Assembly (NCBI GenBank): GCA_002269645.1
Contig: NIVC01000413.1
Location: 310,001-374,000, forward strand
Source: Macrostomum lignano
Taxonomy: Eukaryota
DNA: 64,000 nt
Direction of reading: 5' to 3'
The notes under the pieces are model-generated. The model made no database searches. It was not told the DNA's origin and saw nothing but the letters and a program-made list of their open reading frames with translations. Position 1 is the stretch's first letter. Each line of letters begins with the position of its first letter. Shown here one piece after another: positions 6,206 to 61,991 of the stretch. A program made the translations under genes and the position numbers.

Positions 6206-6273
6206 ATGCTAAATTTACCACTTCCGACTTTGACAGCAGTGTTTGTGCTGCTCCAGGTGCTGACGAGCCCTGG
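6206..6273 (+). CDS. Receptor copy 2 exon 1, signal peptide MLNLPLPTLTAVFVLLQVLTSP(G)
   Basis: ATG, hydrophobic stretch, GG|GTAAGA donor in phase 2. Homologous to 62391-62458. Confidence 0.8.
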
Positions 6274-6975
6274 GTAAGAATTTTATACACATTTTTGTGC
6301 CTGTACAATTCCATTGATACGCAGTCTCGAGCACTTGGTCACACGGGCCGTGAATTCCACTCTTTCCCCCCCCCCTTCGGCCAGTGTTTGCGCCAACCTC
6401 CTCTCCCAGCCGTCTTCGTGGACCCCCTCCCTCTATCTGCCTGCACTCCCCCATTCTTTCTCCCTCTGTTTTGCGCGCTTAAGAGTGATTGGCTGCCCCC
6501 CCCTGCTCTATCCCCATTTTTGTCCGCAGCCCTGCCCCTTGTCGCATTTTTAATGTTTCCTAGCCAATAAGAATTAAGCATCACAGTAATTAATCGCTTA
6601 AGCTCTTACCCAAGGACTAATTTGTCCCTGACATAGGAATTTTTCCACAGAATCTAAGGCCCTCAGAATACAGTGTTAGTGTCAATAGAAACTGCGTCTT
6701 GATATACCGCTATACTGTATCGGTGCACTGTGCGTTCGATGAAACACGGGTGAATGTAGCAGCTATAGCTATATGAAACATATAAATGTATTTTTACACA
6801 AACGCTCAGACAGCATTGTACGAACAGTTGCAGTCAAGCTTTCTTGAGTAAAATCATTTTCCCAATTTCTAGCACCTGCCCGAAAGGCGATGATTTGGTC
6901 AATATTTTTGACCGGTTCACCAGTTTGTGTCACTGTTTATTATAGTCGGTGTCTTTGTTTTCGCCGCATTTCCAG

Positions 6976-7311
6976 TTGCCAAGGCGCCAACCACTACTGC
7001 GTGAATGGGCTGACAATGCTGATAACAGTTGACGATTTTTTCCACCGAGACGAGAGCATCATTCCGAGAATGCTGACGGACGAGTCGGATACGAGCTACA
7101 TGAAATGCAGGTGGATCATTAAGAATTCTGCTGCTCAAGAAGACATGCAGCTTGTGCTACAGGGATTGCTCATCGGTTCTGCCGACAACACCGACTTGCG
7201 CTTACAATCGGGAGAGAATCGAACTGGCTCAGCAGAGTTGGTCATCAGCTACAGCGGAGGAGAAATTCCCGTGACTGCTGGGATGTTTCACGTCCAACCG
7301 CAAAAATCCAT
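6976..7311 (+). CDS. Receptor copy 2 exon 2a, CUB-like extracellular domain (336 nt, phase 2-2)
   Basis: TTTCCAG acceptor; CQGANHYC...CRWIIKNSAAQEDMQLVLQG; donor AT|GTTGGT is weak. The CUB-like label is inference from the C.W.I motif. Confidence 0.65.
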
Positions 7312-7443
7312 GTTGGTCAAAGGGATAGAAGAGATCCTTTTGGTGCTTGAAAATTTTCAAACTGAGAAGTTGTAGGGTAAAAAATGTAATGGAGACCTGC
7401 TACAGGCAAGAATGCAAACAGTCATGTCCATTTGATTGACCTA

Positions 7444-7827
7444 GAGGGGTCGCCATCATAAACCCGAAATATCATACCTCCGAAAACCAAAATAGTGTTG
7501 GACATTACTAGAACTTTCGAAGTTATGATATTTCGGGTATATGATTGGCGTTGCTATTTTGTTTTTCGGAGTTGTAATTTTTCGTGTTTGTGATATTTCG
7601 AGTTTATGATGTGTGTTGCTATTAATTTCGGAGTTACGATCTTTCAGGTTTGTGATATTTCGGGTTTGTGATATTTCGGGTTTATGATATTTCGGGTTTA
7701 TGATGGAAAGCTCTTTTCGGAGTTGTGATTTTTCGGGTTTGTGATATTTCGGGTTTGTGATATTTCGGGTTTATGATGGAAAGCGCTTTTCGGAGTTGTG
7801 ATTTTTCGGGTTTGTGATGCCCCCCTC
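7444..7827. mobile_element. Non-autonomous TIR element (Sola2-like) with internal 16-17-bp repeats and a 4-bp TSD CCTA
   Basis: Termini GAGGGG..CATCA(T/C)AAACCCGAAA are inverted. The duplicated segment near 11065 shows the empty site TTGATTGACCTAGAGCACGAG. Confidence 0.75.
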
Positions 7828-7847
7828 CCTAGAGCACGAGCATAGAT

Positions 7848-8243
7848 CATGGATGAAGGAATGGGAAGGATCGCTCATCTAAAAGCGAGTCTATGGCCAA
7901 AACCTACTAAAAATTGGGATATCCCCCCGTGAATTTCATTTGCTTGTGGAATTTAATAATAGCGCCCCCCCCCCCTAAGTTCCTACTGGCTGAAGCTTTT
8001 ACGCGAGGGAAATTCCAAAGTCACGATTAACGTTAGATATCTTTAACTTCCTCTGGGCCACGACGGCTTAAGGGAAAGAAATTAGCATTCGACCGCGTAC
8101 AAGCTTCAGCCATTAAGAACTTAGGGGGATATTATTAAAATCCAGCAGCCAATGAAATTCATGGGGGAGTATCCCAATTTTTAGGAGCTTCTGGCCATAG
8201 ACTCGCTTTCGGATGAGCGGTCCTTTCTATTCCTTCATCCATG
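7848..8243. mobile_element. hAT-like MITE, 396 bp, ~95-bp TIRs, 8-bp TSD GCATAGAT
   Basis: CATGGATGAAGGAAT...ATTCCTTCATCCATG. TSD at 7840-7847 and 8244-8251. A single GCATGGAT is present at the paralogous empty site near 11080. Confidence 0.9.
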
Positions 8244-8396
8244 GCATAGATACGTACATCAGGCACAAGCTTACACGGGGTGTGATTGATGATTTAATTG
8301 CATTAAAAAGCCATAGAAATCGAAAATATAGGATTCAATACTTGGTTTTGAAGGCCATAGACATTTAAGCCAGAAAAACCAAGTATTGAGTAGTAT

Positions 8397-8705: not shown

Positions 8706-10622
8706 GACTGTATTATAAGGTACTAAACTGGAGAGTGTAAAATTTGTTGGTGCAGTGTTTAATAATGTACTAAATTCTACCAAGTACTCCACTTTGTACA
8801 AATGTACATTTATACATTTTATTGTGTAAAATTTCTGTGCACGATTTGTCCCGTCTTCGTCGATGCAAAAGAGTGCCCTTGTCTATCCGGGATAAAAAGT
8901 AAAAGTAGTGTACTTTTCTAAGACAGTACTGTCTCTGTGTTTTGAAACTTTAATTAATGTCCCGGAGCGAAGAGGCGGAGACGGAGCGAGTGGTGATTGA
9001 GCACACAGCGAGGCAGGCCCAAAGCGATTTGGCCCGCGTTTTTCAAGTATATTGTTTTGAAAATATAAAAAATTGAGCGGCAGCAGCGCACTCTAGCGCT
9101 GAGCTGAGCAACGTATAAATAAAACACACGCACACCGGGGATTAGGAGTGTTGAGACAGAGCATGTGACGTACAGCGCGTAAAAACAAGTACAAGTACGT
9201 ACGGTCGGAGCGATTTAAAAGGAGGGGGCAGCGAGACTATAAAATACTCCGCCCATAAAATGAGTGATTCTAGCGTAAGTGCTGGGGGCAGCAAGTTGTA
9301 TGAAGCATCTCTTAAGGCAATACTCCAGGCCGCAGACTGAAACTTGCAGACAAGACAGTAAATTGTATGCCGAACATGTTGATGGTACTATTCTTTGTCC
9401 AGTTGATATTCTCTGGGTAAGACGTTTATTTTCGATACTTGTTTTCCTGGTTTTCATACGTATTGTAGAGAAATATGTGAAATTACAAAATGAAAATTAC
9501 ATGTAAACTAACTAAAAAACTCATCTGGCTATAGATATAAAATACAGGAGGTTGTCTCTGGGTGGCACACCGCGCTGCCAGCAATGAAGTACAGACTGTT
9601 AGCTTCCCGATTTAAGTATTTAAGTTCTACCTTAAGTTTCGGCGCCACTTCTATCGGAAGCTTTCTGTAGCGTAGGTAGTTGCAGCCACCAATCTGTCGT
9701 GTCTCGGCCTTTGGTGAGGTGAGCTTCCGTCGGGACGAAATAACTAAGACGTGCAAACACAGCACCGTGTGCAAATTTGCAGCTTAACGTACAAAAGGCA
9801 TCTCGTCAGCAGATCCTACCGTGGTAGGAAGGGCAGTTAGCTCTTGTGGGCTTTATAGTCTGGGCTCAGGCAGGCAAATAGTAGAAGGGTTAAATGCACG
9901 CACTCGGGAGCGGCTATGAACTGAATTGAATTGTACGGCAGAACTGGAGAAATCCGAGAAACAAGAAACTGAAACTCCTTGACTACTTGACCAAGGGGTA
10001 AGAGGGCCCGTACTTATAGGCTGGGAATCCCCACTACATCACTGTACGCAAGACCTCGTGACTTAGTTCTATTTTTAGAACTGACGTCACCTCATACCTT
10101 AGATCGGAGCTAAGGTGTCCCCGGGCAGGGTGCGTTAAGCCACGTGACTTAGCATCTATTTTTAGAAACAGTCACCACCTACCTATGGGGCACTGGGATA
10201 CGTGATCCCCATAAACACGGGCCAGCGAGTGCTGTAAATATGTTATATATGCACTATATTATATAATGCATATAATTTCATATTAATGATATATACTTTA
10301 CTCAATTTCAAGGATTCTAGAAGTTAACTTATAGCATTAGTTCGTTTTTGGATAATACATAAACTTTTACGAGATTCCAGTTACATAAAAAACGCAGAAG
10401 TTCGACCGACACAATTCACAGTGTCTATATGATGAACTTTTATCCATTTCTATTTAACCTTTTATGCTTTACAGCATTCGGGGAAGCTGGATTAATTTTA
10501 CACCAAAAGACTCACCTTCTCTAATTGGTAAACATACATTAATTAAAATAGCTTTAGTTTTGAGAGCCAATCCAACTTCACCTGCTTCTGTCACTGAGTC
10601 TTTGTTTTCGCCGCATTTCCAG

Positions 10623-10958
10623 TTGCCAAGGCGCCAACTACTACTGCGTGAATGGGCACACATTGCTGATAACAGTTGACGATTTTTTCCACCGAGACGA
10701 GAGCATCATTCCAAGAGTGCTGACGGACGAGTTGGATACGAGCTACATAAAATGCAGGTGGATCATTAAGAATTCTGCTGCTCAAGAAGACATGCAGCTT
10801 GTGCTACAGGGATTGCTCATCGGTTCTGCCGACAACACCGACTTGCGCTTACAATCGGGAGAGAATCGAACTGGCTCAGCAAAGTTGGTCATCGGCTACA
10901 GCGGAGGAGAGATTCCCGTGACTGCTGGGATGTTTCACGTCCAACCGCAAAAATCCAT
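10623..10958 (+). CDS. Receptor copy 2 exon 2b, duplicated CUB-like exon (336 nt, phase 2-2)
   Basis: Near-identical to 6976-7311, open frame, donor AT|GTTAGT. Confidence 0.75.
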
Positions 10959-11669
10959 GTTAGTCAATGGGATAGAGAGATCCTTTGGTGCTTGAAAATT
11001 TTTAAACTGAGAAAAAACGTAATGGAGACCTGCTCAAGAAAGCAAACAGTCATGTCCATTTGATTGACCTAGAGCACGAGCATGGATATAGCTCACACGC
11101 GGGGTGTGATTGAAATAATAACTTGATCAATTTGCTATGGAAATTGAAAAGTAGCAAAAGTCTGATAACATTGACGGTAATTCTGTCGAAAATCCGTGGT
11201 AATTCCACGGTTATTCCATGAAAGTTCCATGGCAGTTCTATGAAGTGCGCATTTCTGCAAATGCATACATTATTCTTTCCCAGACTAGTTGGCGACTGTG
11301 AGAAAATGCAGCATAACAATTAAATTAATTACAGATGAAGCGCTTCTAAAGAAGCACTAGATGCATGAGATACAGTTTGGGTAGTTAGTTGGTCTTTTCG
11401 TATAATCTAGATGTCCTCAGGTACAAATAACTAGACATTAAAATATTTAGTTAGATCTAAGATGTTTTACCTTGCCTACGAGTATAAAAATATACAATGG
11501 TTAAAGTCAATCAATAATTCTAGGAGCTTTCTAGTTCAATGTCGGTCAAATCTCTCGGGCATAAAGGCGTTAAGGTCAACAAGCACTATGACTTTGCGCT
11601 ACGGTCTCCACTCGACCAAAATACTTGTGTTCCGACAATTGGGAAACTAAAATCACATTGCTATTTTAG

Positions 11670-11911
11670 GTTCCCGCTCACGGTGGAGGCCAGCTGGGAT
11701 CCGAGGTACCAACGTGCCGCCCAGGTAAAGCTGAGACTCCTGCTCATTCTTCCTGGACTCTGCCACAGAGACATGCTCAGCTTCAACGGAAGCTGCTACG
11801 CTGTGAGCAAAGTCAAAGCCAATGTGACAGCCGCAATGTCGAGCATCAGAGGCGATGCTCAGCTGGCCAGCTTCTCCAGTATATCTGAGATCCGCAGTCT
11901 CATTGCTGCAA
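11670..11911 (+). CDS. Receptor copy 2 exon 3, C-type-lectin-like domain start
   Basis: TTTTAG acceptor and A|GTGAGT donor. 242 nt, as in copies 1 and 3. Encodes LCHRDMLSFNGSCYAVSK. Confidence 0.85.
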
Positions 11912-11985
11912 GTGAGTTGTGACTATGATAATTTGTTTTCAATTTCCATGGCTTTACTATAAAAATAAGCATCAAAACGTTTCAG

Positions 11986-12151
11986 ACACAGCCAGACTAT
12001 CAGTGCACCCGTACAGACGGCCCCTGAGCCTGAGCCAGCCAGTGCGGCTCGGCATGTTCTACAGTGCAGCCGATGCCTCAGCGCTCTCTCTAATCAGACA
12101 GGATAGCGGTGAATGTGAATTGAAGCCTGTTCTCGGATCTGAGAAATTTGT
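11986..12151 (+). CDS. Receptor copy 2 exon 4
   Basis: TTTCAG acceptor and GT|GTGAGT donor. 166 nt, near-identical to 1090-1255. Confidence 0.85.
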
Positions 12152-12250
12152 GTGAGTAATTCCGTTTCATCTCTGTATTCGTTGAGGTTTGAAAAAAGAA
12201 GTAGAGAGTAAAATTAGGCACTATCTTTTACGAGTAACAGTAGAAAGACC

Positions 12251-13835
12251 GGGGTGCTTTCACAAGGTCGAAGTTTCACAACGTCGAAAAGCAAATTATT
12301 GCACAAGGTCGAAATTTCACAAGGTCGAAATTTCACATCGAAAACTCTAGCAGAAAACTTCATAAGGTCGAAATTTCACAAGGTCGAAATTTCAGAACAT
12401 CGAAAACTCAAATAGCAGCCACTTTCACAAGGTCGAAATTTCACAAGGTCGAAATTTCAGAACATCGAAAACTCTAGCAGAAGACTGCATAAGGTCGAAA
12501 TTTCATAACATCAAAACTCAAATAGCAGCCACTTTCATAAGGTCGAAATTTCACAAGGTCGAAATTTCACAACATCGAAAACTCGAAAAGCAGCCACTTT
12601 CACAAGGTCGAAATTTCAGAACATCGAAACTCAAAAAGCAGCCACTTTCATAAGGTCGAAATTTCAAAACATCGAAAACTCGAAAAGCAGCCACTTTCAT
12701 AAGGTCGAAATTTCACAAGGTCGAAATTTCATAACATCGAAACTCAAATAGCAGCCACTTTCAGAAGGTCGAAGTTTCACAAGGTCGAAATTTCACAACA
12801 TCGAAAACTCGAAAAGCAGCCACTTTCATAAGATCGAAATTTCATAACATCGAAACTCAAATAGCAGCCACTTTCACAAGGTCGAAATTTCCCAAGGTCA
12901 AAATTTTACAACATCGAAACTCAAATAGCAGCCACTTTTACACGTCGAAATTTCCCAAGGTCGAAATTTCATAACATCGAAACTCAAATCGCAGCCACTT
13001 TTACACGTCGAAATTTCCCAAGGTCGAAATTTCATAACATCGAAACTCAAATAGCAGCCACTTTTACACGTCGAAATTTCCCAAGGTCGAAATTTCATAA
13101 CATCGAAACTCAAATAGCAGCCACTTTTACACGTCGAAATTTCCCAAGGTCGAAATTTCACAACATCGAAACTCAAATAGCAGCCACTTTCACAAGGTCG
13201 AAATTTCAAAGCATCGAAAACGCTAGCAAGGTACTTTATAAAGTTGAAATTTCACATGAAAACTCTACAGCACTCACTATACTCCATATGACAAGATCGA
13301 GTAGTGCTGTTTTCTCATAAACAGTGTCTCTACCATAGCAGGTATTTCAAATACATTACGAAATTGAAATACAACTCCAAGCTATTGATACTTTGAAGCA
13401 TGTTAGCCTCCTCTCCAATACTGGAAATGTGAATCATAAATTCTTTCAAGTCTATATATAAAATACAAATATCGATAACTTTTAAATTTGGGTTTCCGAC
13501 TTTAATTTGGATTTGACCGGCAGGGAATTTCGCTTGACTTACTGTTGACACAATATACGTTTTGTATCTGTATTCGCTTAATAAGTAAAGGAAAGTAAGG
13601 TGGTTTGTTCCATGTACTATGTAGGAGCTGCTCAGCTGTGCAGATTTTAGCTACACCGTGCGTGTGGGGTGCGTAGTGCGTACCTCACAAAGTCGCAAGT
13701 CGCTTAGGTGCGTTTGCTATCAAGTTTGGCCGTGTAGTGAAAGTTGGAGTTTGAAACCCCCGCCCTGTTATGTAAAAAACTACAAACAACTCGCCGTGTT
13801 ACAATATCCTAGCTGTAGTAAAAACATGTACATGT
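12251..13835 (+). repeat. Left TIR: outer tandem domain (AAGGTCGAAATTTCAC motifs, 63-bp units) and inner unique domain ~13210-13835
   Basis: Visible tandem repeats. The 21-aa periodic ORF 12898-13209 gives the 63-bp period. Confidence 0.9.
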
Positions 13836-14299
13836 ATATAGCATGCGTTTTCTTACATGTAATTACATGTATTTTTATGTATAGTATTTTTATAATATAA
13901 TTAATAATTTTAGGGTTCAATCAATTAAGGCTTAAGACGAAAATCAGCACAATATCCAGAAACTTTAAAAACAAGAGAATATTTTTTGGCATGTTTTATA
14001 TTTTTTATCAACCGAAGGCAACCGTTAAAGCAAAGACCTCAGTAAGACACTGTTAGGTATATAGACAAATAAGTAAGTTTTTTAGCCAAAATGATTATTA
14101 CAGCCTGTCTATCGATTCATATATACTGTATAACTGTCTAATTGTACCCATTCATCTACCAATTTATTTTTCCATCTAATATTAATATTTATTCTTTATT
14201 GTTGCTAAAGTGATAATATTAAAATCAAAGCAGATTACCTTTATCAATCTACCTATTCATCTGTCTATCTATGTATTAACCTTGACCAATCTATCAAGG

Positions 14300-14523
14300 A
14301 GTTAGGAGGCAAGGAGTATTTTGTGTGCCGCTATACTACTTGTGCTGCCAAAGCACAACTAGAAGGTGGAATTGTAATGACTAGTGGTCAGCACAACCAT
14401 GGTCCAGAGACTGATGAAAAATTAAATGTGATGTCTTTGAAGCAGAGGCTCTGCGATTCTGCCATCAGTCAACCATCAAAGCGGCTTCGCACATTGTTTC
14501 GCACGACTTCGCAAAGGCACTAA
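14300..14523 (+). pseudogene. FLYWCH-type zinc-finger fragment (Mutator-like transposase N-terminus)
   Basis: YFVCRYTTCAAKAQLEGGIVMTSGQHNHGPETDEKLNVMSLKQRL fits C-x4-C...HNH followed by LK.R. It lies just inside the left TIR. No catalytic MULE domain is seen. Confidence 0.6.
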
Positions 14524-14589
14524 CCGTGTGCGAATATTTGAGTATTAAGTCTTGTAATGTAACTCTTGTCTATTCTTAAGTCTTAACTA

Positions 14590-14730
14590 ATGTATTAACT
14601 AATTATATAATAATATTATTATTATATATATTATTATTATATATTATATAATATTATTATTATATAATAATTTAATATAATCTAATAATATTTATTATAT
14701 ATTTAATATATATTTAATATATATTTAACA
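14590..14730. repeat. AT-only low-complexity tract
   Basis: (TA/TTA)n composition. Confidence 0.9.
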
Positions 14731-15019
14731 AGCTGTTGAAACCCGCGGATTTTGAACCCGGGGAATTTCAATCCCCGGAACTACTTTTGCATGTATTCTG
14801 AAATCTAAGGTCATACACAAACAAAAACTTGTTAATAGTTAGTAGGATAGAGGTAGACATAAAATGGAGTACATTCGTGTAAAATTAGGATTTGAGGCAA
14901 ACATTGATATTGTTGGCTGGGGTACTGCACAGAATGTCAGGCAATGTCTGTCTGACTCTAAAACATGTATTGGCAAACTCTGGCCTCTCCCTGACTCTCC
15001 CTATGTCCCTTGGATCCTT

Positions 15020-52060: not shown

Positions 52061-52068
52061 CGGTTACA

Positions 52069-53609
52069 CATGTACATGTTTTTACTACAGCTAGGATATT
52101 GTAACACGGCGAGTTGTTTGTAGTTTTTTACATAACAGGGCGGGGGTTTCAAACTCCAACTTTCACTACACGGCCAAACTTGATAGCAAACGCACCTAAG
52201 CGACTTGCGACTTTGTGAGGTACGCACTACGCACCCCACACGCACGGTGTAGCTAAAATCTGCACAGCTGAGCAGCTCCTACATAGTACATGGAACAAAC
52301 CACCTTACTTTCCTTTACTTATTAAGCGAATACAGATACAAAACGTATATTGTGTCAACAGTAAGTCAAGCGAAATTCCCTGCCGGTCAAATCCAAATTA
52401 AAGTCGGAAACCCAAATTTAAAAGTTATCGATATTTGTATTTTATATATAGACTTGAAAGAATTTATGATTCACATTTCCAGTATTGGAGAGGAGGCTAA
52501 CACGCTTCAAAGTATCAATAGCTTGGAGTTGTATTTCAATTTCGTAATGTATTTGAAATACCTGCTATGGTAGAGACACTGTTTATGAGAAAACAGCACT
52601 ACTCGATCTTGTCATATGGAGTATAGTGAGTGCTGTAGAGTTTTCATGTGAAATTTCAACTTTATAAAGTACCTTGCTAGCGTTTTCGATGCTTTGAAAT
52701 TTCGACCTTGTGAAAGTGGCTGCTATTTGAGTTTCGATGTTGTGAAATTTCGACCTTGGGAAATTTCGACGTGTAAAAGTGGCTGCTATTTGAGTTTCGA
52801 TGTTATGAAATTTCGACCTTGGGAAATTTCGACGTGTAAAAGTGGCTGCTATTTGAGTTTCGATGTTATGAAATTTCGACCTTGGGAAATTTCGACGTGT
52901 AAAAGTGGCTGCGATTTGAGTTTCGATGTTATGAAATTTCGACCTTGGGAAATTTCGACGTGTAAAAGTGGCTGCGATTTGAGTTTCGATGTTGTGAAAT
53001 TTCGACCTTGGGAAATTTCGACGTGTAAAAGTGGCTGCTATTTGAGTTTCGATGTTGTAAAATTTTGACCTTGGGAAATTTCGACCTTGTGAAAGTGGCT
53101 GCTATTTGAGTTTCGATGTTATGAAATTTCGACCTTATGAAAGTGGCTGCTTTTCGAGTTTTCGATGTTGTGAAATTTCGACCTTGTGAAACTTCGACCT
53201 TCTGAAAGTGGCTGCTATTTGAGTTTTCGATGTTGTGAAATTTCGACCTTGTGAAACTTCGACCTTCTGAAAGTGGCTGCTATTTGAGTTTTCGATGTTG
53301 TGAAATTTCGACCTTGTGAAAGTGGCTGCTTTTTGAGTTTCGATGTTATGAAATTTCGACGTGTGAAAGTGGCTGCTATTTGAGTTTCGATGTTATGAAA
53401 TTTCGACGTGTGAAAGTGGCTGCTATTTGAGTTTCGATGTTATGAAATTTCGACCTTGTGAAAGTGGCTGCTATTTGAGTTTCGATGTTATGAAATTTCG
53501 ACCTTATGAAAGTGGCTGCGCTTTTCGAGTTTTCGATGTTATGAAATTTCGACCTTGAAATTTCGCTTTTCGAGTTTTCGATGTTGTGAAATTTCGACCT
53601 TTGTGAAAT
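52069..53609 (-). repeat. Right TIR of the giant element
   Basis: Reverse complement of 12251-13835, with one extra 63-bp unit (124-aa versus 103-aa periodic ORF). Confidence 0.9.
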
Positions 53610-53754
53610 GAAAGACCATGATTTCGAATACACACATTTTTTTGTCTGGATCTCCAAAAATATTCAACCAATTGCCATGAAAATCCAGAACACGGGCTAA
53701 AAGTTTTCGCTCTATTTGATGACAACTTCGAGAATCACGAAAAATCGGTATCGT

Positions 53755-54750
53755 CGAGATATTCAACGATTCTCCTCGGGGTGTCTAGTGGAAAAAACCA
53801 CCAACATTGGCAAAATTTTTCTGCTCACAAAATCTCATCATGAAACCACGTCGGCTCGACAAACTATGCATATCAGTCGTAGAGGCCTTTGTTCTCAGCA
53901 TCACAGGCACCAGGGTTCCCTTCGTCACCATCTGGACATCGGCGGCGACCGTCGGGACCTTCAATAAAAGCACCCGATTGGCATCTTAGAGATGGTTGCG
54001 TTCCCAAAACTGAAATGGAAGAATCCTCTTCTGCATGCAGCATTCAGTCAGTAGACACAATCGGTGAATGAAATGGACGATGGTGACCCTCTAGACTGAT
54101 CTGTAGACATACAGGCGACCAGAGTTTTGTCGACACAGAGGTACGGCCCGGAAAGAACAGGATGGCGCAGCTGACTGACAAAGGTGTCCCACAAGCGTCG
54201 GATGTCGTAGAGCTTGTCCGTTGCGGCAGTCCGCTGATGATGTTCGGCAGTTTCGAATTTAACATGGTGCAAAAGCATTGCATAATACGCAGACATGCCT
54301 GGTTTGGTGCCTTGATAGAAAAAGCATGATGTTGGTGGTGTCAGCTCGTCGGGGCCGCGTGGTGGCTCTCCGTTGAAGGTCCCAAAGGTCGCCTGTATGT
54401 CTACAGATCAGTCTAGAGGGTCACCATCGTCCATTTCATTCACCGATTGTGTCTACTGACTGAAGGCTGCATGCAGAAGAGGATTCTTCCATTTCAGTTT
54501 TGGGAACGCAACCATCTCTGAGATGCCAATCGGGTGCTTTTCTTGAAGGTCCCGACGGTCGCCGCCGATGCCCCAGATGGTGATGAAGGGAACTCTGGTG
54601 CCTGTGATGCTGAGAACAAAGGCCTCTACGACAGATGGACCCAGATTATTGAGCCAATATGGATTCACCATTCACCATTAAGGTTTATACAGTGTAGTGT
54701 TGGTTGTCCTAGCCACCAGTGTCTTCGACAAGAATCGTTGAATATCTTGA
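53755..54750. repeat. Long inverted repeat: arms ~53872-54120 and 54387-54636 highly similar, with a degenerate outward extension
   Basis: CTAGACTGATCTGTAGACATACAGGCGACC versus GGTCGCCTGTATGTCTACAGATCAGTCTAG; AGATATTCAACGATTCT (53757) versus AGAATCGTTGAATATCT (~54731). Confidence 0.85.
54113..54310 (-). pseudogene. piggyBac transposase fragment (DDE_Tnp_1_7-like)
   Basis: MLLHHVKFE...TDKLYDIRRLWDTFVSQL...GPYLCVDKTLVA matches the piggyBac DKL..IR..WD.F....L...Y..G.YLTVDEQLV block. Confidence 0.75.
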
Positions 54751-54949
54751 ACATCTGACGTCGGATGACTTTGAAAGTTAGTTCGTCGGAAAGGGCGGAA
54801 AATTTTGATTCATATGGTGGACTTTTAAGAAAATCGGTAATTCGGTTTGCGAGCTATCGTGAAATGGGTCGTGTGTATTTGTACTATACGACGTGGTCTT
54901 TCTCCATGGGGAAAATTAGTGTGGTCTTTCTACTGCTAAATAATTACAG

Positions 54950-56215
54950 AGATCCAGGCGCTGCGACAGGTCCGTGCGTGAATGTGAAGGTGAATTCTTC
55001 GGACAGAGCGGTGATCGAATCAAGAAGCTGTAGCAGCCAGCTTCCATTTCTTGTAAAGTTTCCTGAGAGAGGAGGCACTGCGGGACCCTATGCAGACAGC
55101 TGTAGCGCTAAGACGATCATTTGGAAAGTCCTGGAAGCACCGCGACAGAAATGGACGACTAAAGTGCCGATAAATTCTATCGAATCGAGCGGCAGGATGT
55201 TATTATCAGAAAAAGTACAATCAAAACCAGGCCAGGCCTCAACTGAAGCACCAGCAAGTAACTTGGCTATCATTTATCGAGTTTCCTTCACGATTCCGGT
55301 GGTCATTGTTATAGTCATTTTGATAATTATTGTCTACAAAAGATTTTACTGCTTATCAAATAGTTCTGAGCAGTCTGTTGGGAAAGGAAACGCTGATACT
55401 GAAACACTGGATAATGTTTTAAAACCTTTATTTAAGCATCAACCTGGGATTTCAGGCGGCGTTTTAGAAGGTGATGCAAACAAGGTTTCAACTAGTACTT
55501 CAGAAAACTACTACCTCTTAAACGAGAGCTGCCCAGACGACCAGCGCAGTATGGCCCACGACTTCACTTTTAGTGGGCCAATTGATGCACCATTGAATGC
55601 GCTACGAAATTCGCCACCGATTGCAAGACTCGATGCACCACCTGATGCACCTTTTGATGTGACACATCTAAATTGGACGGACGGATCAGATTCAGAGCAG
55701 CACTACACACGCGTCAGCTGGGATTCAAGCAGTTATTACAGTCCGCCACCGGACTCGATTCCTTATGGTGGTCTATCCATTGAACTACCGGAAGGACAGT
55801 TAGATTTTGCACCTCCCGTTGTATCGGCGCGTGCAGCACCCGATGTACCACCCAATGCATCACTTGATGCGCCACCCGATGCTCCACCTGATGCTCCACC
55901 CAATGCTCCACCCAAAGCTCCACCCAATGCTCTACCCGATGCTCCAGCCGATGCTCCAGCCGATGCTCCACCCGATGCTCCACCCGATGCTCCACTCGAT
56001 GGGCCACTCGATGCAACAGTGCATTCTGAAGACAGTCAGAGTCGGACTGCTCTGTCACGAGCGTGCGAAGCCGGTCACTTGCGAGTAGCGAAGGCTCTGA
56101 TAGACAGAGGAGCGGATGCGAGTAATCGAAACTGCCGGAGTCTGCCGTGTGCACAGGTGGCCCAGCGAGTTGAACAGCGGCAGGTGCTGCGGCTGCTGAA
56201 TCCCAGTGGAGCGGG
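54950..56215 (+). CDS. Receptor copy 2 exon 5: lectin-like end, TM helix, Pro/Asp (DAPP)n linker, one ankyrin repeat
   Basis: AATTACAG acceptor homologous to 1345. Uninterrupted frame. TM FTIPVVIVIVILIIIVY followed by KR. RTALSRACEAGHLRVAKALIDRGAD is an ankyrin consensus. Donor GG|GTGAGT. Confidence 0.85.
55850..56020 (+). repeat. Coding 12-bp minisatellite GATGCTCCACCC (DAPP repeats)
   Basis: Visible tandem units within the exon. Confidence 0.9.
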
Positions 56216-56422
56216 GTGAGTGAGGCGGGAAATGAAAATGTTATGCTTCTGTTCTGTGTTAACCGTTGAAAGTGGAATTTTTTTGCAAAATGCCCTTCGA
56301 AACTCAGAAGGGCTGAGATTGGGTTTGACTGAGTGCTGCAGCAGCTGCACTCTCAGCTCTCCTGCTTGTTCTGTCCATCCAACCCTGAGCAAATCACACA
56401 CACACATCTTGGATCATTCCAG

Positions 56423-56793
56423 GCTCTCAGACGACTCCCAGCAAGACAGGCGTCTGAGCGAGAAGCTGCATAGACTGCTCACTAAGGCAGGATTCACCGA
56501 GCAGAGAGCAAAGTGTCAGCAGAGACTGGCTGGCTGGCTTCAAGAAGTCGCTCAAGTCCTCACACAGGATGGCAGGCAGATGACAGGCAGCTACGCAGAG
56601 GGCTGGGCCAACACCAACAGTCTGGTGCAAGTGAACGGCAGGACAGCTGCAGACTTGGACATTGACTGGACTGTGCTGGCTGCTGGGCAAGAGCTCCATC
56701 TGGAAGGTAGCTTCAACAGAGATTGGCAGCAATGCAGAGACGCCACTCGGTTGCAGGTCAAAGAGGGTCACGCACAGGTGGCAGTGGGAGCAG
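56423..56793 (+). CDS. Exon 6: Mab-21/cGAS-like nucleotidyltransferase N-lobe
   Basis: TTCCAG acceptor in phase 2, matching the exon 5 donor. MTGSYAEGWA...ADLDIDW fits the hG[GS]...DhD nucleotidyltransferase signature. Donor G|GTGAGT in phase 1. Confidence 0.85.
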
Positions 56794-57699
56794 GTGAGTA
56801 AGGCTGGGTTCAACAGAATGCTGAGATCAGCATGCAACTGGAAGCCCATTAACCTTGCTCAGTTTTACATTCGCTACCGAGTGGCGCCCAGCCTCCAGCA
56901 GCTTCTGACTGCGAATGTCGGTTTCGGTGATGGAACAACTGGCAGGTAAAATAAAAGCGAAAACTCTGATGACAACTGGCTGAGCCGGGCCATTGGTTTG
57001 TTTAAATTCACAGGCTCCCATTGTAGCAGAGTGGTTGCAGCGGTGATTGGGTGATTGACGGTAGGCGGCATGGCTCTGCTGAAGTGTCGCTGCTCTCACT
57101 TGGAAAATTTCCAACAAAATAAACCGAAGCCGCCCTGACTGCCTGATTGGTGCCTTGCTGCGGGGCACTGGGTCCACGGGGCACCGGGTACTGGAAAGTG
57201 TGTAAATAAGCGTTACTTCTTGAGTGTAAAGTTAAATGTTTTTGAGCCTTCAGCTTATCATACTTTTCAGTAAAAATATTTCATGACAATCTTCGAGGCT
57301 TTTTAGGCATACATAATATTATTATATGTATACCACATAAAAATAATTTATTACACATGCTCCAATTGAGCCAGATGTGCAACCTGTGAGCCATTGATTT
57401 TCTCTAGCTCATGTAAAAGTTCAAAGCATGATTTAGCAGTGCACGAAAATCCCAAAAACCGCATTAGGGCGAAGCGATGTTACATGTATTTATTTATTGT
57501 TTGTCGACCCAGACCGAATTGCATAGGGTGGTGGCAGCAACTGTACATTTGCCTACTTACGAGTACAGATAAGGGAAAGAGAGTTGGAGAGATCCGGAGA
57601 GAGAACTGGCTGATGCGTGGAGCCGGAAAAATGGGGCAAGGCGCTCTAGAGAAAATCAGTGGCTCACATCTCTCCTCAACGCAGAAAAGAAAATAATTT

Positions 57700-59450
57700 C
57701 TGGGAAACTCCATGCTTGCATTCGAAAACACGGGGATACTCAAACGCTTGGCGCAGCGGCGAGGAGACGGCACTTCAAGACCAGTGGCCTATGCCAGTCG
57801 GACGCTCTCCGATTTTGAGTCCAGAAACTCCCAGACCGAAAAGTGACATTGGCAGTGAAATTCGGATGTCTCCGATTCCAATTCTACCTGCACGGCGCCC
57901 CCGATTCGATGTGATCACGGACCACAGGCCGTTGGTCAACATGCTGGCGCCAGGGTCGAGGCCGCCTCCTAGAGTCGAGCGAATGGCTCTGCAGATTCAG
58001 CACATGACTTTCAAGTTGGTGTACCGCCCAGGGCCTCAGAACGCAGCGGGCATCCTCAGCCGACAACCGCTAGCGATGTCCGGGCGCAGCAAAGACGCAC
58101 AGCAGGACTCCGCCTGCATCGGTGCCGTACTGCAGGCCGCGGTGCCGAAAGCGCTCACTGTAGAGGACATCAGGCGACACTCGCAGGCTGACCCGCTGAT
58201 CAGAGCCGCAATCGCCGCCATCCAGGGAGCCAGGTGGGACCTCGGCCACCCGGAGCTGAGGGCACTGTATGCACTACAAGACGAGCTTGCTGAGGAGGAC
58301 GGGGTGCTGCTTCGGCGGGACAGGATTGTGGTGCCAAGCAGCCTCCGGGAGACAATAGACCATATGAATAAAATGAGCAACTGCTCCAACAGAAGCATTG
58401 ACTCGGGCCTGTATGAATAAACTAAGAAATTGCTCATGAGATTTTTCTCAAGAGAATTTGCTCTGATTTTTATTCATACGGGCAAATGTTGCGCCTCGCA
58501 CATGCCGGCCACCTGGGACTGCGGAAGACGCTGGCCAGGCTGAGCAGCAAAGTCTGGTGGCCAAAGATGAGCGCAGATGCGGACAAGGCCGTCAGCAGTT
58601 GCCGCAGCTGCATCATGGCGTCACATAAGCCGACAGTCAGCGCGACGCCACTGCAGCCGTCCAGCATCCCCAAGGGCGCCTGGTTGTCGATCGGCGCCGA
58701 CTTCCTCGGTCCGATACAGAACAAGATGCTGCTCGTCTGCGTGGATCACTACTCTCGGTATCCCGAAGTGCAAGTCATGCAGTCTACTTCAGTGGAGGCA
58801 GTCATCCCGAAGCTGCGGGAATCATTCTGCAGGTTCGGCATCCCGGAGGAGCTCGTTACGGACAATGGGCCTCCATTCTCGTCGGCGCAGTTCAAGGACT
58901 TCCTCAGGAGCTTCGGAATTCACTCCAACACTCCGCTCTACCCAGCGGCCAACGGCATGACGGAGCGCCTGAACAGATCGATCAACAAGGTCGTCCGCGC
59001 CGCAATCGCGGAGAACAGAAACTGGCGCGAGGCTTTGGACGAGTGGATTCTGGCGTACCAGACGGCGCCACACGCCACAACCGGGCGCGCCCCCGCAGAG
59101 CTGCTGATGGGCCGCGCTATGGGAAACGGCGTCCCCGGCCGGCGGCCTCCAGCGCGGGTGCACATCAACGACAAGGAGCTGCGGGAGCATGACCGCAAGC
59201 AGAAGCTGACAATGAAGCGGCACGCCGACGCTGCTCGGAGACCAAAAGAGCAAAACTACGCGGTCGGCGACCAGGTGCTGAGGAAACGCTTCAACCCGCT
59301 GAAGGGCCAAACCCCATTCGAGAGCGAGGCCTGGACCGTTACCAAAGTGGAAGGCAACTCGCTGCAGCTACAGCGCGGGCTGGTCACCTGCTGGCGGCAC
59401 TGCGCGGCCCTGAAGGCGCTGCCACCGGAGCCCGACCTGGTGGAGCCTGG
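57700..59450 (+). mobile_element. Ty3/Gypsy pol fragment (RNase H end plus integrase), disrupted
   Basis: FDVITDHRPL...VYRPG..NAAGILSR; HAGHLG...WWPKM...SCRSC zinc-binding motif; DFLGP, TDNGPPF and ERLNR integrase core. Confidence 0.9.
58360..58481. mobile_element. ~120-bp MITE-like insertion interrupting the Gypsy pol frame
   Basis: CCATATGAATAAAAT versus TTTTTATTCATACGG. It splits LRE/MLRLAH. Confidence 0.55.
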
Positions 59451-59454
59451 TACA

Positions 59455-59563
59455 GAGTTAAGTGTCTTGCTCAAGGACACAAATTGTTCCAGTGGGATCT
59501 CGAATCGAACCTTCGACCTTTAGGTCGTGAGTCCGGCGCTCTGACCGCTGGACTACAACCCCC
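59455..59563 (-). mobile_element. tRNA-derived SINE (head plus start of the conserved body)
   Basis: Minus strand GGGGTTGTAGTCCAGCGG (A box)...GGTTCGATTC (B box), followed by GTGTCCTTGAGCAAGACACTTAAC. Confidence 0.75.
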
Positions 59564-59789
59564 TCAACAACTAGGCTAAGCCTACACATTACGTACAGAA
59601 TGCTATCATAGACAAAATTCCTGACTCAAAATAAATGACGCTTAGATACTCGCACTGCGAGCACTCCTCCATGTTAGCCCGAATCTCAATGATGACGTGC
59701 AGGTAACTGCTAACACGAAACCCATGTAGGGAATTGATTGATTGAAATAATTTATCGGGTTAGGTTCGCCAGTTTCTCGATAAGTAGCT

Positions 59790-60400
59790 TTTTGATTATC
59801 TCAGCTCCTTGTTGCGGAGTCCGGAAATGAAATGGTCTCTCAGGCGGACGTCAAGATCCGTGAAGCTACAATGCTTAGCCGCTTGGCGCAGTCTTCTGCA
59901 ACCACGTTCTTCACCCTCTTCTCGCTTCATGTGGTGGAAGGCGTAGTGTTGCGTGATTTCGAACTTGGCTGCTTTGCGTCTCAGCTGAAACAGATTCTTC
60001 AGCTGAGAGTAGCTTTTCTGTTCTGGCTTCTCAGATAGCGCGGCGTCTGGCATAAATGCAATGCCTTATCCCAAGATTGGCTATCGGTGCAAGCTTCAGG
60101 ACGTCGTCGTCCCATTTCTGGACCTTTGCTGTGCCTTCAAAACGCTGGAACCAGCACCAATTTCGTCAGGCACATCCGTTTCGAGGGGCTCGATAAAACC
60201 AGTCGTGGTTGCCAGTGTTACTTCTTAGGGTCAAGCAATATTTTAGAGCCTTTAGCTTATCAAATTTTTCAGGTAAATTTATTTTGTGATATTCGTTGAG
60301 ACTCTTTTAGCCTATGCATTGTAGCACACAGCATGTGGTCGCACTTCTAACAATAAAATGTGCCTTTTTTCAAGTATTTAAAATGTGTATTAGTCAAATA
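59790..60400 (-). mobile_element. Gypsy 5' fragment in the opposite orientation: LTR end, PBS-like site, degenerate gag
   Basis: Minus strand GTAACA-CTGGCAACCACG; RLRQAAKHCSFTDLDVRLRDHFISGLRNKELR is a gag-like motif. Confidence 0.65.
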
Positions 60401-60498
60401 CTCGAAACTCCCAACCAACCAGTAGAAAATTTCAGTTTCAAACCAACCCATCATTTTTCACTCGTCACAAAGAGACTATTCGCTCACTCCACCCTCAG

Positions 60499-61991
60499 GC
60501 AGCCAACCTGCAGTGACAGCGACGATGTGCGGTGTGAGGTCTGCACAGGACACGTGTCATGCGATCGATTGCTGCAGCAGTTTCTGTAAGGACAGAGTTG
60601 GAAAACTACTTCCATCTAGTGGTTTTGTTCACCTCGTGCGGGCGACCAGACCGAGCTCGACCAACAAGCTCAGAGTGAGCTTCAGCTTCCAAGAAAAAGA
60701 CATCATGAGACAGCTGAGCACAGTCCAGGGCCAGCTGTTCACACTTATCAAGTTTATCTTCAAGAGACACTTGCCGCTCAATCTGGACACACCTGGACTC
60801 AAGACCTACCATGCAAAGACTCTGCTCTTCACAATGCTCGAGAAGCATGGCACAGATTCTGAAACTGAGGCTTGGCAACCGCGCAATTTGATCGCTCTTC
60901 TGAAAGAGTCTCTCGACATGATGCTGAGCTTCATCGACTCAATCAGCTCACCCAATGAGTGCATGCCTCACTTCTTCATGCAAGACGCTCCGCTCTACTT
61001 CAAGAATGCTGGAATCGGCGGCGACTTCGACAACACGAAGGCGAGGCTCCGGGAAAGACTTTTTGAGCTGAGAACCGACATTGGTGGAGTGGTCGAGCAG
61101 CTAAGGAGACTCGTGAGACCTCTGCAGTCAGAGAAGTTCTACTTTTACCCATTCACTCTGCTGCCTCTGACAGCGCCGCCTGTTGTCACGGGGATTAGGG
61201 AAGGAAGAGCCTACCAAGAAATGTACTACAAGTTCGCAGACGTGTACAGTGTAGTGCATCAGTGTGTGAGCGAGCTGCAGTCGGAATCGAGCGATAAAGA
61301 CAACCTGATGAGGCAGCTCAGGCTTCTGCATGAGCAGCAGTGGTGCAAGTGCTCCGCCCTGTGCATGACTGCCATGGCGCATTTAAAGTTTGGAGACTCT
61401 GAGGAAGCTGAGAGACTCGCGATGGAGCTCCAGAGACATCAGGTTGAGTCAGGATTGAAGCCAAAAGATATTCGAGAAGAGAGTAGCTGGTACGGGAGTA
61501 GTAAGATAGAACTGCCAGTAGACTCAGACTGGGCGTGGAGGTTCTGCCTCCCCTGTGACTCTCCGCCTCGCTTCCCATTCCTTCCCGAGTTCACACAGAC
61601 TCTGTTCACAGCCAGACTGTCGCAGCCTCTCTCCTCCCACCTGTACGTGAACTTCCGCTGCCTGAGCTGGAGTCTCCAAGCTGAGCTGCTCCGCAATCGC
61701 GCACCTGCAATCGCATTCGATTATTGGATTGAACAGCTGCTTGAGGATCCGGACTTGGAGGAGCTGCTCACTCTGGCTAATTACAGCGACTGCCGCGAGC
61801 ATGTGGAGCTCAGCCTGCAGCAGATGGAGATGATCGAGAAAGAGAGACGCATCGCAATGGAGACGCAGGACAAGGAGAAGATCGGCTGGGTCAGGGAGAA
61901 GCTGGAGAGACTCGATGCAGCACCCGGAGTCCTCGAGCTCAAAGTCGAGTCGCAAAGTCGAGGTCGGAAAAGCAAGGCAGAGTCAGACTAA
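60499..61991 (+). CDS. Exon 7: Mab-21/cGAS-like C-lobe plus helical C-terminal region, stop TAA
   Basis: CCCTCAG acceptor in phase 1, matching the exon 6 donor. QDTCHAIDC (candidate third catalytic Asp); LRVSFSFQEKDIM; LKTYHAKTLLF; CMPHFF are Mab-21 family motifs. Uninterrupted frame of about 497 codons. Confidence 0.88.

Follow-up and report, generated by a model that had tools for sequence, protein, structure and literature searches.

The analysed window, a 64,000-nt stretch of Macrostomum lignano DNA, contains a predicted eight-exon gene on the forward strand flanked by two members of a tandem gene array (Table 1). All exons (8/8) are preceded by AG and followed by GT, except for the start ATG of exon 1 and the terminal TAA of the last exon, and splicing yields a stop-free frame of 4278 nt (1425 aa) with both 336-nt exons included or 3942 nt (1313 aa) with a single one. 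Junctions 56215/56423 and 56793/60499 match intron positions of the M. lignano paralog P0004, and at the position of junction 12151/54950 the paralogous gene of P0036 has an intron of 90 bp. The exon borders together with the paralog introns thus bear out the AG/GT ends, matching phases and single open frame described in the first-pass annotation. One uninterrupted ORF (54765-56219) holds both the TM helix and the ankyrin repeat, which had likewise been assigned to the same exon, so that their join is independent of any splice; the TGA noted behind exon 6 is present (56217-56219). At 484 and 492 codons, the ORFs are much longer than chance would allow. A continuous, phase-compatible reading frame is supported, running from a predicted signal peptide via extracellular domains, TM helix and ankyrin remnant to a Mab-21/cGLR module. 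Judged from sequence homology, genes of two Macrostomum families, a receptor-like array gene and an ankyrin-cGLR gene, are combined in this chimeric locus.

Table 1 Features of the chimeric locus and its surroundings (window coordinates)
Feature	Position	Strand	Description
Preceding array member, 3' exons	1-2341	+	Last-exon ORF 1373-2341: TM and a different tail, without ANK or Mab-21
Exon 1	6206-6273	+	Start codon and signal-peptide-like hydrophobic N-terminus (MLNLPLPTLTAVFVLLQVLTSPG), GT donor
Exon 2, CUB-like domain copy 1	6976-7311	+	Arm of tandem duplication, arms ~3.6 kb apart
Exon 2', CUB-like domain copy 2	10623-10958	+	Copy collinear with M. lignano paralog
Exons 4 and 5	11670-11911, 11986-12151	+	First part of Cys-rich second extracellular domain; family-invariant GDAQLASF motif
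Transposon-rich insertion, 42.7 kb	12229-54936		Alignment to L002 intron 23247-23336 (90 bp), satellite arrays, Helitron domains
Inverted repeat, left arm	12881-13838		958 nt, 99 % complementary to right arm
Degenerate, fragmented Helitron	38125-44345	-	Within insertion; Helitron_like_N (7e-53, 41738-42358) and Pif1-type helicase ORFs (Pif1_2B 6e-17, 38125-38895)
Inverted repeat, right arm	52065-53022		958 nt
Exon 6, host part	54950-56006	+	Extracellular-domain end, stalk, TM helix (55263-55337), KRF stop-transfer, tail homologous to P0036, DAPP 12-nt tandem repeat (55837-56014, 178 nt)
Left junction (PLDAT/VHSEDSQ)	56004-56039	+	Microhomology CTCGATGC / CTCGGTGC, DAPP repeat versus donor-family ankyrin exon
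Exon 6, donor part	56007-56215	+	Ankyrin array remnant: one repeat (56040-56132) and capping half-repeat (~1.5 repeats)
Exon 7	56423-56793	+	N-terminal helix and first half of NTase core, homologous to paralog exon 12564-12932; GS (56583-56606), DxD (DLDID, 56652-56669)
Insertion in intron 7, ~3.2 kb	57176-60399	+	Paralog homology broken between 57175 and 60400; retroelement integrase fragment 58486-59523 (Integrase_H2C2 2e-13, rve 3e-10)
Exon 8	60499-61991	+	Third catalytic Asp (SAQDTCHAI, 60540-60566), Mab-21_C helical domain, family-specific C-terminal helical extension, stop TAA
Right junction	62032-62037		Donor homology stops 41 nt past stop codon; array homology (upstream region of next receptor-like gene) then starts
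Next array member, start	62038-64000	+	Homology to array

Exons 1 to 6a are part of a tandem gene array encoding orphan type-I membrane proteins that are restricted to Macrostomum. In these proteins, a signal peptide is followed by a CUB-like beta-sandwich and a Cys-rich second domain, and the TM helix leads into an Asp/Pro-rich cytoplasmic tail that evolves fast. Identity to the M. lignano array locus L002 amounts to 93 % for window 1-1951 (L002 11958-13899) and 92 % for 10617-12177 (L002 21682-23272), and window 54937-55750 aligns with L002 23324-24101. The upstream region (5896-6295) recurs at 62038-62480, ahead of the next array copy. The two CUB-like exons differ at 11/336 nt. Their CUB label, proposed in the first-pass annotation, stands weakly and at the level of the fold only: the AF2 model of the 86 %-identical paralog P0039 is a beta-sandwich with CUB domains as top Foldseek matches. 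Searches gave no support for the accompanying lectin-type (CTL) label. The Cys-rich domain, for which any fold assignment is an unconfirmed candidate, runs unbroken over the exon 5/6 junction in P0036, P0039-P0041 and P0044-P0045. Lys/Arg residues lie on the C-terminal side of the TM helix. Members of the ectodomain family carry short or repeat tails, and neither ANK nor Mab-21 was found among those scanned.

The stretch from 56007 to 62032 is a 5'-truncated genomic copy of an ankyrin-cGLR gene with introns retained, comprising the back two-thirds of this cGAS-like enzyme gene; in M. lignano, the family has at least 37 soluble members and had been listed among the cGLRs by Li et al. 2023. The ankyrin remnant (87 % identity to the ANK-cGLR paralog L001, 10241-10468) stays under the Pfam Ank cut-off (19.2 versus 21.1 bits), has Foldseek ANK matches with a probability of 1.0 over ~60 residues and evolves at a dN/dS of ~1. 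A 54-nt microexon located upstream of the paralog's exon-7 equivalent is missing. Exon 8 scores above the Pfam Mab-21_C cut-off (24.9 versus 24.1 bits) and shares 84-85 % amino acid identity with paralogs, while the profile of the module matches the structures of cGLR1 (8gjy, 4.7e-5) and cGAS (3e-4). The module is 80 % identical to PAA68676.1 (P0012; BOX15_Mlig016402g1), which Li et al. 2023 (PMC9980059) list as #93 in their cGLR screen, with PAA93208.1 as #92. The screen table gives these closest two subfamily members without a product name, and the text does not name an 'Ml-cGLR'. By the field's own catalogue, i.e., the PAA68676.1 entry, the module in the window is a cGLR. The Mab-21/cGAS-like identity claimed beforehand is consequently sustained by Pfam, profile matches and the catalogued paralog, as is the retention of GS, DxD and third Asp by their position in family-invariant alignment columns, distant M. 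lignano cGLRs included. In the AF2 model of the enzyme, pLDDT is <50 over the NTase core, and the active-site geometry is therefore only putative. Homologs of both halves are all from M. lignano, save two JGI metagenome matches to the enzyme half.

At the DNA level, homology to L001 is limited exactly to 56007-56234, 56329-57175 and 60400-62025 and extends through the introns, and both junctions are sharp. The in-frame join on the left sits inside the 12-nt DAPP repeat. L002 contains no ANK-cGLR segment, the gene there terminating with ...DAPLDKKICLLD and a stop codon. No fusion was found at other loci among >50 ANK-cGLR relatives and ~40 ectodomain relatives, and a convincing TM segment or window-type ectodomain is absent from all other ankyrin-cGLR relatives recovered. 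The join thus represents a DNA-level chimera that occurs once and not a conserved architecture. Seven candidate products are missing from a collection of 15 billion proteins, and neither a fusion transcript nor a gene model was found.

The 42.8-kb intron 5 equals the 90-bp paralog intron plus a 42.7-kb transposon nest, to the left of which 77 nt of the original intron are retained and to the right 13 nt. The nest is recent, since its 958-nt inverted arms are 99 % identical. As it ends 13 nt short of the exon-6 acceptor, the joining of ectodomain to enzyme in the mRNA represents the weakest point, and it is uncertain that the full-length form is expressed today.

The reading we favour, at a probability of about 0.55, is that of a young, lineage-specific Macrostomum chimeric gene with a predicted membrane-tethered cGLR product of putative function. 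The host would be one member of the tandem array of type-I membrane proteins, in which a microhomology-associated DNA event may have swapped the end of the last exon and the 3' flank for a fragment of an ankyrin-cGLR paralog. This fragment would extend from the middle of the donor ankyrin exon to 41 nt beyond the stop codon, carrying both introns and joined in frame. Later damage would comprise the nest in intron 5, the 3.2-kb retroelement fragment in intron 7 and the duplicated CUB exon. Transcription, and splicing at the inherited sites, would yield a single-pass membrane protein in whose predicted cytoplasmic part a ~50-residue Asp/Pro-rich linker and 1.5 ankyrin repeats precede the entire cGLR nucleotidyltransferase, GS / DxD / D intact. 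For the type-I transmembrane cGLR suggested at first pass, the continuous frame, catalytic residues and cGLR identity speak in favour, whereas its occurrence at one locus only, the sensor array cut to ~1.5 repeats and the nest in intron 5 speak against it.

The 687 donor codons contain neither stops nor frameshifts, and the dN/dS of the donor part is 0.37-0.44 pairwise and ~0.31 on the window branch (dS ~0.19); this low ratio in the enzyme part may largely be older than the fusion. The window copy departs from the family at 9/180 invariant positions (5 % versus 0-2 % in typical paralogs), four of which fall within the ankyrin remnant, while a further one (S to L) adjoins DxD. Such an excess would agree with a dead-on-arrival or recently inactivated chimera, i.e., a real rearrangement and pseudogene in waiting that gives no functional full-length product and whose frame would have stayed open only because too little time has passed since the events. 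We regard this as possible on account of the uniqueness of the fusion among its relatives, the lost sensor array and microexon, the young insertion next to the acceptor, the retroelement fragment in intron 7, the near-neutral evolution of the host family tail (omega 0.81) and the zero products on record. However, an unconstrained 2.06-kb CDS should at this dS hold several stops or frameshifts instead of none at an omega of ~0.31, every inherited splice site is intact, and the catalytic residues are all kept.

The insertion separating exons 1-5 from exon 6 could also divide the locus into two units, with exons 6-8 expressed alone from a promoter in the nest or by spliced-leader (SL) trans-splicing onto the 54950 acceptor. 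This would give a membrane-tethered cGLR with either a short ectodomain or an N-terminal anchor, and exons 1-5 would be silent or encode a truncated secreted protein. SL trans-splicing is widely used in M. lignano, an in-frame ATG ORF begins at 54765 within the intron with a further Met 28 residues ahead of the TM helix, and MiD49/51 illustrate that a protein can work with its N-terminus anchored and its Mab-21 fold in the cytosol; nevertheless, with the exon-5 donor and exon-6 acceptor intact and conserved with the paralog, we consider this division unlikely. Very improbable is an assembly artefact, in which the receptor-exon/ANK-cGLR join or the 42.7-kb block would have been mis-joined in repeats. 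The genome is indeed highly repetitive and paralog-rich, the left junction lies within the 178-nt tandem repeat, and the large block is bordered by the near-identical inverted arms and satellites. Yet two independent mis-joins at sharp junctions ~6 kb apart would be needed, the left junction keeps the frame with microhomology involving the donor sequence itself and not just the repeat, and the donor fragment, which differs by 13 % from all paralogs known, is thus no stray read of any of these.

Compared to the ankyrin-cGLR family of M. lignano, the favoured chimeric gene agrees in its enzyme module (76-84 % protein identity, ~87 % DNA identity with introns), intron positions, GS/DxD/D and long C-terminal helical extension. 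The parents differ in being soluble, with an MGQN... start, helical repeats and a multi-repeat ankyrin array; in the window gene, everything before the last 1.5 ankyrin repeats is now signal peptide, ectodomain, TM and tail. Vertebrate ITPRIP, ITPRIPL1 and ITPRIPL2 (DANGER family) are likewise single-pass, with a signal peptide or TM N-terminal to the Mab-21 domain, but none of them is closely related; they have a short ectodomain devoid of a CUB-like domain and are ancient conserved genes as opposed to a one-locus chimera; to our knowledge, no nucleotidyltransferase activity has been demonstrated for them. MiD49 and MiD51 (MIEF2 and MIEF1) share membrane anchoring and a cytosolic Mab-21/NTase fold, differ by an N-terminal anchor in the mitochondrial outer membrane without ectodomain, and bind nucleotide while being catalytically inactive. 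Among membrane-anchored Mab-21-fold proteins (ITPRIP/ITPRIPL1, MiD49/51) we know of no catalytically active one.

MiD49 and MiD51 are counted among the cGLR-superfamily paralogs (PMC10732462), and it is only for Mab21L1/2/3 that Li et al. 2023 (PMC9980059) state the lack of a predicted functional active site. There, 13 % of cGLRs are stated to bear extra domains; the ANK-, TPR- and death-domain fusions of corals and other invertebrates resemble the window gene in joining the cGLR core to protein-interaction modules, but all of these described there are cytosolic, and no cGLR fused to signal peptide, ectodomain and TM is reported in that paper as searched. The combination of TM and Mab-21 fold as such has precedents in ITPRIP/ITPRIPL1 and MiD49/51.

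Receptor guanylyl cyclases are alike in logic, combining a type-I ectodomain, one TM helix and a cytoplasmic nucleotide-cyclising enzyme. The analogy is functional only: they are non-homologous, ancient, conserved, dimeric and experimentally established, whereas the coupling in the window gene is purely hypothetical. If functional, the ectodomain would set the local concentration or clustering of a membrane-tethered cGLR and would thereby stand in for the ankyrin/helical-repeat sensor array of the soluble parent family.

Exon border checks placed AG upstream and GT downstream of the eight exons of the locus at 6206-61991 (+ strand), with an ATG at 6206 and a TAA at 61989-61991. Spliced together, the exons read in a single frame through 4278 nt without a stop (1425 aa), or through 3942 nt (1313 aa) when only one of the two 336-nt CUB exons is used, as the first-pass annotation had proposed. 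These two exons are copies within a tandem duplication, lie ~3.6 kb apart and differ at 11 of 336 nt. Also in agreement with that annotation, the join between TM helix and ankyrin repeat is exon-internal, both being contained in a single ORF, the end of which is the TGA at 56217-56219 named there. The ORF lengths (484 and 492 codons) are well above random expectation. An exact-sequence look-up in a collection of 15 billion proteins retrieved none of 7 candidate products of the locus, among them the 1425-aa form, both 1313-aa forms and the ORFs of exons 6 and 8.

DNA homology to the locus of an ANK-cGLR paralog (L001, encoding P0004) spans 56007-56234, 56329-57175 and 60400-62025, including the donor introns. 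The exon borders of this paralog coincide with the window junctions 56215|56423 and 56793|60499; an extra 54-nt microexon of the paralog is absent from the window. On the left side, donor homology sets in at 56007, where a 12-nt tandem repeat runs out; here the repeat unit ...CCACTCGATGC abuts donor ...ATCGATCTCGGTGCGTCAGTGCG, forming a microhomology. This junction is in frame (PLDAT|VHSEDSQ versus LGAS VRAEDSQ in the paralog). On the right side, donor homology stops at 62032, 41 nt past the stop codon, and the sequence from 62037 onward belongs to the upstream flank of the following array gene. Since the donor introns were carried along and homology is sharply limited on both sides, the event is, judged from these alignments, a DNA-level swap of the host 3' end for a ~2.8-kb piece of an ANK-cGLR gene truncated at its 5' end. 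An artefact of splicing annotation is thereby dismissed, and retroposition of the donor was rejected on account of the two introns. Helitron gene capture was set aside as fusion mechanism, since the element's remnant at 38-44 kb (minus strand) is part of a separate insertion and 12 kb away from the junction.

The ankyrin segment scores below the Pfam Ank cut-off (19.2 vs 21.1 bits), corresponds by homology to the final repeats in the strong ANK arrays of the paralogs, and matches ANK structures over ~60 residues in its AF2 model (Foldseek probability 1.0). The segment is read as the remnant of an array truncated to 1.5 repeats. The further TM plus Mab-21 fusions, for which a search had been suggested, did not emerge: among all recovered relatives of both halves, there was no convincing case of a TM segment or ectodomain combined with Mab-21. 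On this comparison, the fusion is a one-off DNA chimera of two expanded families.

Relatives of the ectodomain numbered 14 in a set of 5.8 billion proteins and 41 in 1.84 billion cluster representatives, all examined ones being Macrostomum-like and devoid of Pfam domains. Three of them (P0045, P0065 and P0036) are in full length type-I proteins with signal peptide, ectodomain, TM segment and a short or repeat-rich tail. P0036 (BOX15_Mlig023892g1) has the TM segment and juxtamembrane tail of the window gene, followed by ~270 aa of DAPP/DEPP repeats that end with ...DAPLDKKICLLD before the stop; both ankyrin and Mab-21 are absent from it. At the P0036 locus (L002), receptor-like genes are arrayed in tandem. 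The window shows this same array: a copy at 1-2341 precedes the chimeric gene, and a further copy follows from 62038. An 18-nt satellite (CTGTCTTAGAGTAGGGTA) is situated between two receptor-like array genes of the window, and related arrays occur at L002 16375-18048.

The hydropathy profile of the window protein has just two hydrophobic stretches (aa 1-19 and ~485-512). KRF directly follows the TM helix on the cytoplasmic side, and the predicted ectodomain contains 5 N-x-S/T sequons and 12 Cys. By hydropathy and sequence, the protein thus has the features of a type-I single-pass membrane receptor (signal peptide, one TM segment, positive-inside, Cys and sequons outside), a layout shared with P0045 and P0065; type-I transmembrane topology as such had been proposed in the first-pass annotation.

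The ectodomain model was made on P0039, a paralog 86% identical, as proxy for the window protein. Residues 1-148 (CUB-like domain) were predicted as a beta-sandwich with moderate confidence (pLDDT ~65-88), and its top Foldseek matches were CUB domains, at weak E-values between 3e-4 and 5e-2 (Neto2, 3e-4; C1r CUB2, 1.8e-3; neuropilin-2 CUB, TM 0.55). Searching Pfam and PDB with the ectodomain, by sequence as well as by profile, retrieved nothing, Pfam CUB not matching the window protein; automatic UniProt names include 'CUB domain-containing' for three ectodomain relatives. The label 'CUB-like', already used in the first-pass annotation, is tenable for the first domain, as suggested by the model. 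The second (Cys-rich) domain was modelled in P0039 with pLDDT < 50. The designation lectin-type was dropped for want of support, since Pfam Lectin_C (E <= 1), CTLDs among the PDB profile matches and lectins in Foldseek were all lacking; what is left is a loose resemblance in pattern (C..F.GSCY...A...C...LAS...E..F).

In the enzyme half, Mab-21_C (PF20266) scores 24.9 bits (cut-off 24.1; E 2.4e-5), marking the Mab-21 C-terminal helical (HhH/H2TH-like) domain. The family profile matched cGLR1 (8gjy, 4.7e-5) and cGAS (3e-4 to 2e-3) in PDB, and MAB21L1 merely at 0.21, with alignments confined to the C-terminal helical domain; the NTase-core profile Mab-21 (PF03281) gave no match at E <= 1 in the window protein. 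The proposed HMM check of the spliced protein hence verified Mab-21_C, the NTase-core, CUB and Lectin_C profiles failing to match and Ank remaining sub-threshold. Of the catalytic signature that characterises pol-beta-type NTase cores (h[G]S ... [DE]x[DE] ... [DE]), the window enzyme has GS (aa 860-861), D884-I-D886 (DxD) and the third Asp D946. These columns are invariant in 10 aligned sequences, including M. lignano cGLRs of 29-31% identity to the window module. In the alignment with two M. lignano proteins of 29-31% identity that Li et al. 2023 (PMC9980059) cloned as cGLRs, GS and DxD are invariant, as is the Asp further downstream ('RPxxD'). GS and DxD are spaced by 22 residues in the window enzyme, and a Ser beside DxD is replaced by Leu. 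The AF2 model of the ANK-cGLR part, built from a shallow alignment of 38 close paralogs, has a mean pLDDT of 65.6 (NTase core residues 116-253 < 50), and Foldseek with this model yielded ankyrin matches only.

From 'VHSEDSQSRTALS...' to the C-terminus, 37 M. lignano proteins align with 54-82% identity, none of them (0/37) upstream of this point. Full-length models of the enzyme-half paralogs start with MGQN..., followed by helical repeats, a multi-repeat ankyrin array and the Mab-21 module; no convincing TM segment was found upstream of the enzyme module among the ANK-cGLR paralogs, indicating soluble proteins. One paralog with listed ANK domains (P0012, PAA68676.1), the enzyme module of which is 80% identical to that of the window, was cloned as #93 in the screen of Li et al. 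2023, and #92 (PAA93208.1) belongs to the same subfamily. That study describes ANK-cGLR fusions and the absence of cGLRs from most platyhelminths; its searched text names no active M. lignano cGLR. On the basis of this subfamily relationship, the profile matches and the invariant catalytic residues, the enzyme module is a member of the known, catalogued cGLR expansion of M. lignano and falls into its ANK-cGLR group, corroborating the previous prediction of a cGAS-like enzyme with catalytic residues.

Neither half has an identical match; in DNA, the receptor-like part reaches 92-93% with its best match over exons and introns, and the enzyme part 87%. The window is hence assigned to M. lignano, as an unannotated paralog, haplotype or homeolog, or else to a very close relative of it. 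All protein relatives of both halves are from M. lignano, a free-living flatworm, except two JGI metagenome matches (P0092 and P0094, on contigs of ~3 kb) with 60% and 32% identity to the Macrostomum cGLR module, which presumably derive from flatworm DNA in environmental samples. Additional domains were observed in P0009 (PAA66964.1; C-terminal protein kinase), P0013 (second divergent cGLR module) and P0003 (reverse transcriptase), reflecting either genuine domain shuffling or merged gene models. On another M. lignano contig (L004), two ANK-cGLR last exons (34236-35666 and 36278-37615) lie ~2 kb apart; the family therefore also occurs in local tandem copies.

The exon 5/6 intron comprises 90 bp in L002, and the window retains 77 nt from its 5' end and 13 nt from its 3' end, separated by a 42.7-kb insert. 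Since the Cys-rich domain is contiguous over the exon 5/6 junction in six relatives, both exons were ancestrally joined; as judged by this comparison, what separates them today is a transposon nest of recent origin, just 13 nt before the acceptor. The insert is flanked by inverted satellite arrays and rich in CT-rich simple repeats. In structure it resembles either an inverted duplication or a giant element of the foldback or TIR type; a transposase of its own was not identified within the block. A 30-nt repeat (GAAATCCTCTCCGTGAAACTGAAAACCATC), which recurs at > 10 places, alternates with the long CT-rich tracts, and long '+' ORFs in these tracts are low-complexity artefacts. Just 5' of the exon-6 acceptor, where the branch point would be, a local inverted repeat is MITE-like. 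Intron 7 carries a further insertion with a GC content of 0.57 compared to ~0.42 around it.

Coordinates of repeats, insertions and fusion-related features in the window
Feature	Position	Strand	Description
18-nt satellite	2778-3520		41 copies, 89% matches
42.7-kb insert in exon 5/6 intron	12229-54936
Inverted arms of 42.7-kb block	12881-13838 / 52065-53022		958-nt pair, 99% complementary; satellite units 47-226 nt
CT-rich tracts	14000-34000, 46000-52000		periods 7, 12, 14; GC skew to -0.56
Duplicated 402-nt unit	29298-30099		two copies, 99% identity; internal telomere-like (GGTTAG)n stretch
Degenerate Helitron	38125-44345	minus	Helitron_like_N 7e-53, Pif1-type helicase; split over broken ORFs
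ORF next to Helitron	43794-44345		STPR-type peptide repeats, over 69-nt tandem repeat 43930-44251
Local inverted repeat	53841-54667		187-nt arms (98% complementary) with 266 nt between them, inside a weaker 95-nt pair
ORF with TM helix and ankyrin repeat	54765-56219
TM helix	55263-55337
12-nt tandem repeat	55837-56014		CACCCGATGCTC, encodes DAPP
Ankyrin repeat	56040-56132
Intron 7 insertion	57176-60399		3.2 kb; retroelement integrase fragment 58486-59523 (Integrase_H2C2, rve)
ORF in intron 7 insertion	57659-58420		253 aa, no Pfam match

The 687 donor codons contain zero stops or frameshifts, and pairwise dN/dS of the window copy versus four paralogs amounts to 0.37-0.44. On the window branch, which includes time before the fusion, dN is 0.058 and dS 0.186 (omega ~0.31), with higher omega (0.5-0.7) on the paralog branches. 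Against constraint speak the omega of ~1 in the ankyrin remnant, the departures of the window copy at 9 of 180 near-invariant family positions (0-2% in ordinary paralogs) and the fast evolution of the host part (omega 0.56 for the ectodomain, 0.81 for TM segment and tail). Among the departures, S144L is next to DxD, and four affect the remnant repeat (G8S, H36N, D38N, G41S; numbering of the 686-aa donor segment starting VHSEDSQ). Taken together, the data fit a copy on which purifying selection probably acted during most of its past, the window branch being partly pre-fusion. The locus is best viewed, with a probability of roughly 0.55, as a real young chimeric gene that is coding-competent and has a putative function. 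A non-functional chimera appears less probable. All evidence for the chimera comes from a single locus; an assembly artefact is considered very improbable.

As to the product of a young chimeric gene, the DNA encodes in one frame a predicted type-I topology and, on the cytoplasmic side, a complete cGLR with catalytic residues, preceded by an Asp/Pro-rich linker and 1.5 ankyrin repeats, so that a membrane-tethered cGLR would result if the gene is expressed. A tethered enzyme formed from exons 6-8 on their own seems unlikely. Because the presumed ligand-sensing repeat array of the parent family is missing, control may have shifted to the ectodomain or TM segment (clustering, localisation) or may have been lost altogether. 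Provided that a full-length mRNA is made, one may speculate about a true ligand-coupled receptor-cGLR, in which the orphan CUB-like ectodomain would control cyclic-nucleotide synthesis of the tethered enzyme by ligand binding or clustering at the cell surface. This possibility, nested within the readings of a real gene and of a non-functional chimera, is itself a doubtful one; if it held, the logic would be like that of receptor guanylyl cyclases.

By current description, cGLRs are soluble sensors acting in the cytosol. ITPRIP/ITPRIPL1 and MiD49/51 are not known to be enzymatically active. These distant, conserved proteins have a membrane-anchored Mab-21 fold, with type-I topology in ITPRIP/ITPRIPL1 (PMC11357910, PMC1784063; MiD49/51, PMC10732462). 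ANK, TPR and death domains, all interaction modules of the cytosol, are the partners in the cGLR fusions known so far (Li et al. 2023). A catalytically intact cGLR with signal peptide, CUB-like ectodomain and TM segment is absent from the literature searched; TM-anchored Mab-21 proteins as such are known. As a whole, the first-pass annotation is upheld for the frame, the exon-internal TM-ankyrin join and the cGAS-like enzyme, and is corrected for the lectin label; the one-off chimera, the transposon nest as giant intron, the truncated ankyrin array and the existing TM-anchored Mab-21 proteins were not part of it.

If functional, the chimera would extend the cGLR family to surface or lumenal sensing, and a true receptor-cGLR would represent a newly evolved 'receptor cGLR', with pattern-recognition modules re-wired by exon-level DNA shuffling. 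Even if non-functional, it provides a clean, datable case of how such architectures arise, in that an in-frame, microhomology-associated join in a coding tandem repeat links two fast-expanding, lineage-specific families. M. lignano possesses a large cGLR repertoire, unlike most platyhelminths, and its ANK-cGLR expansion, with relatives containing kinase or second cGLR modules, is a place to seek more domain shuffling.
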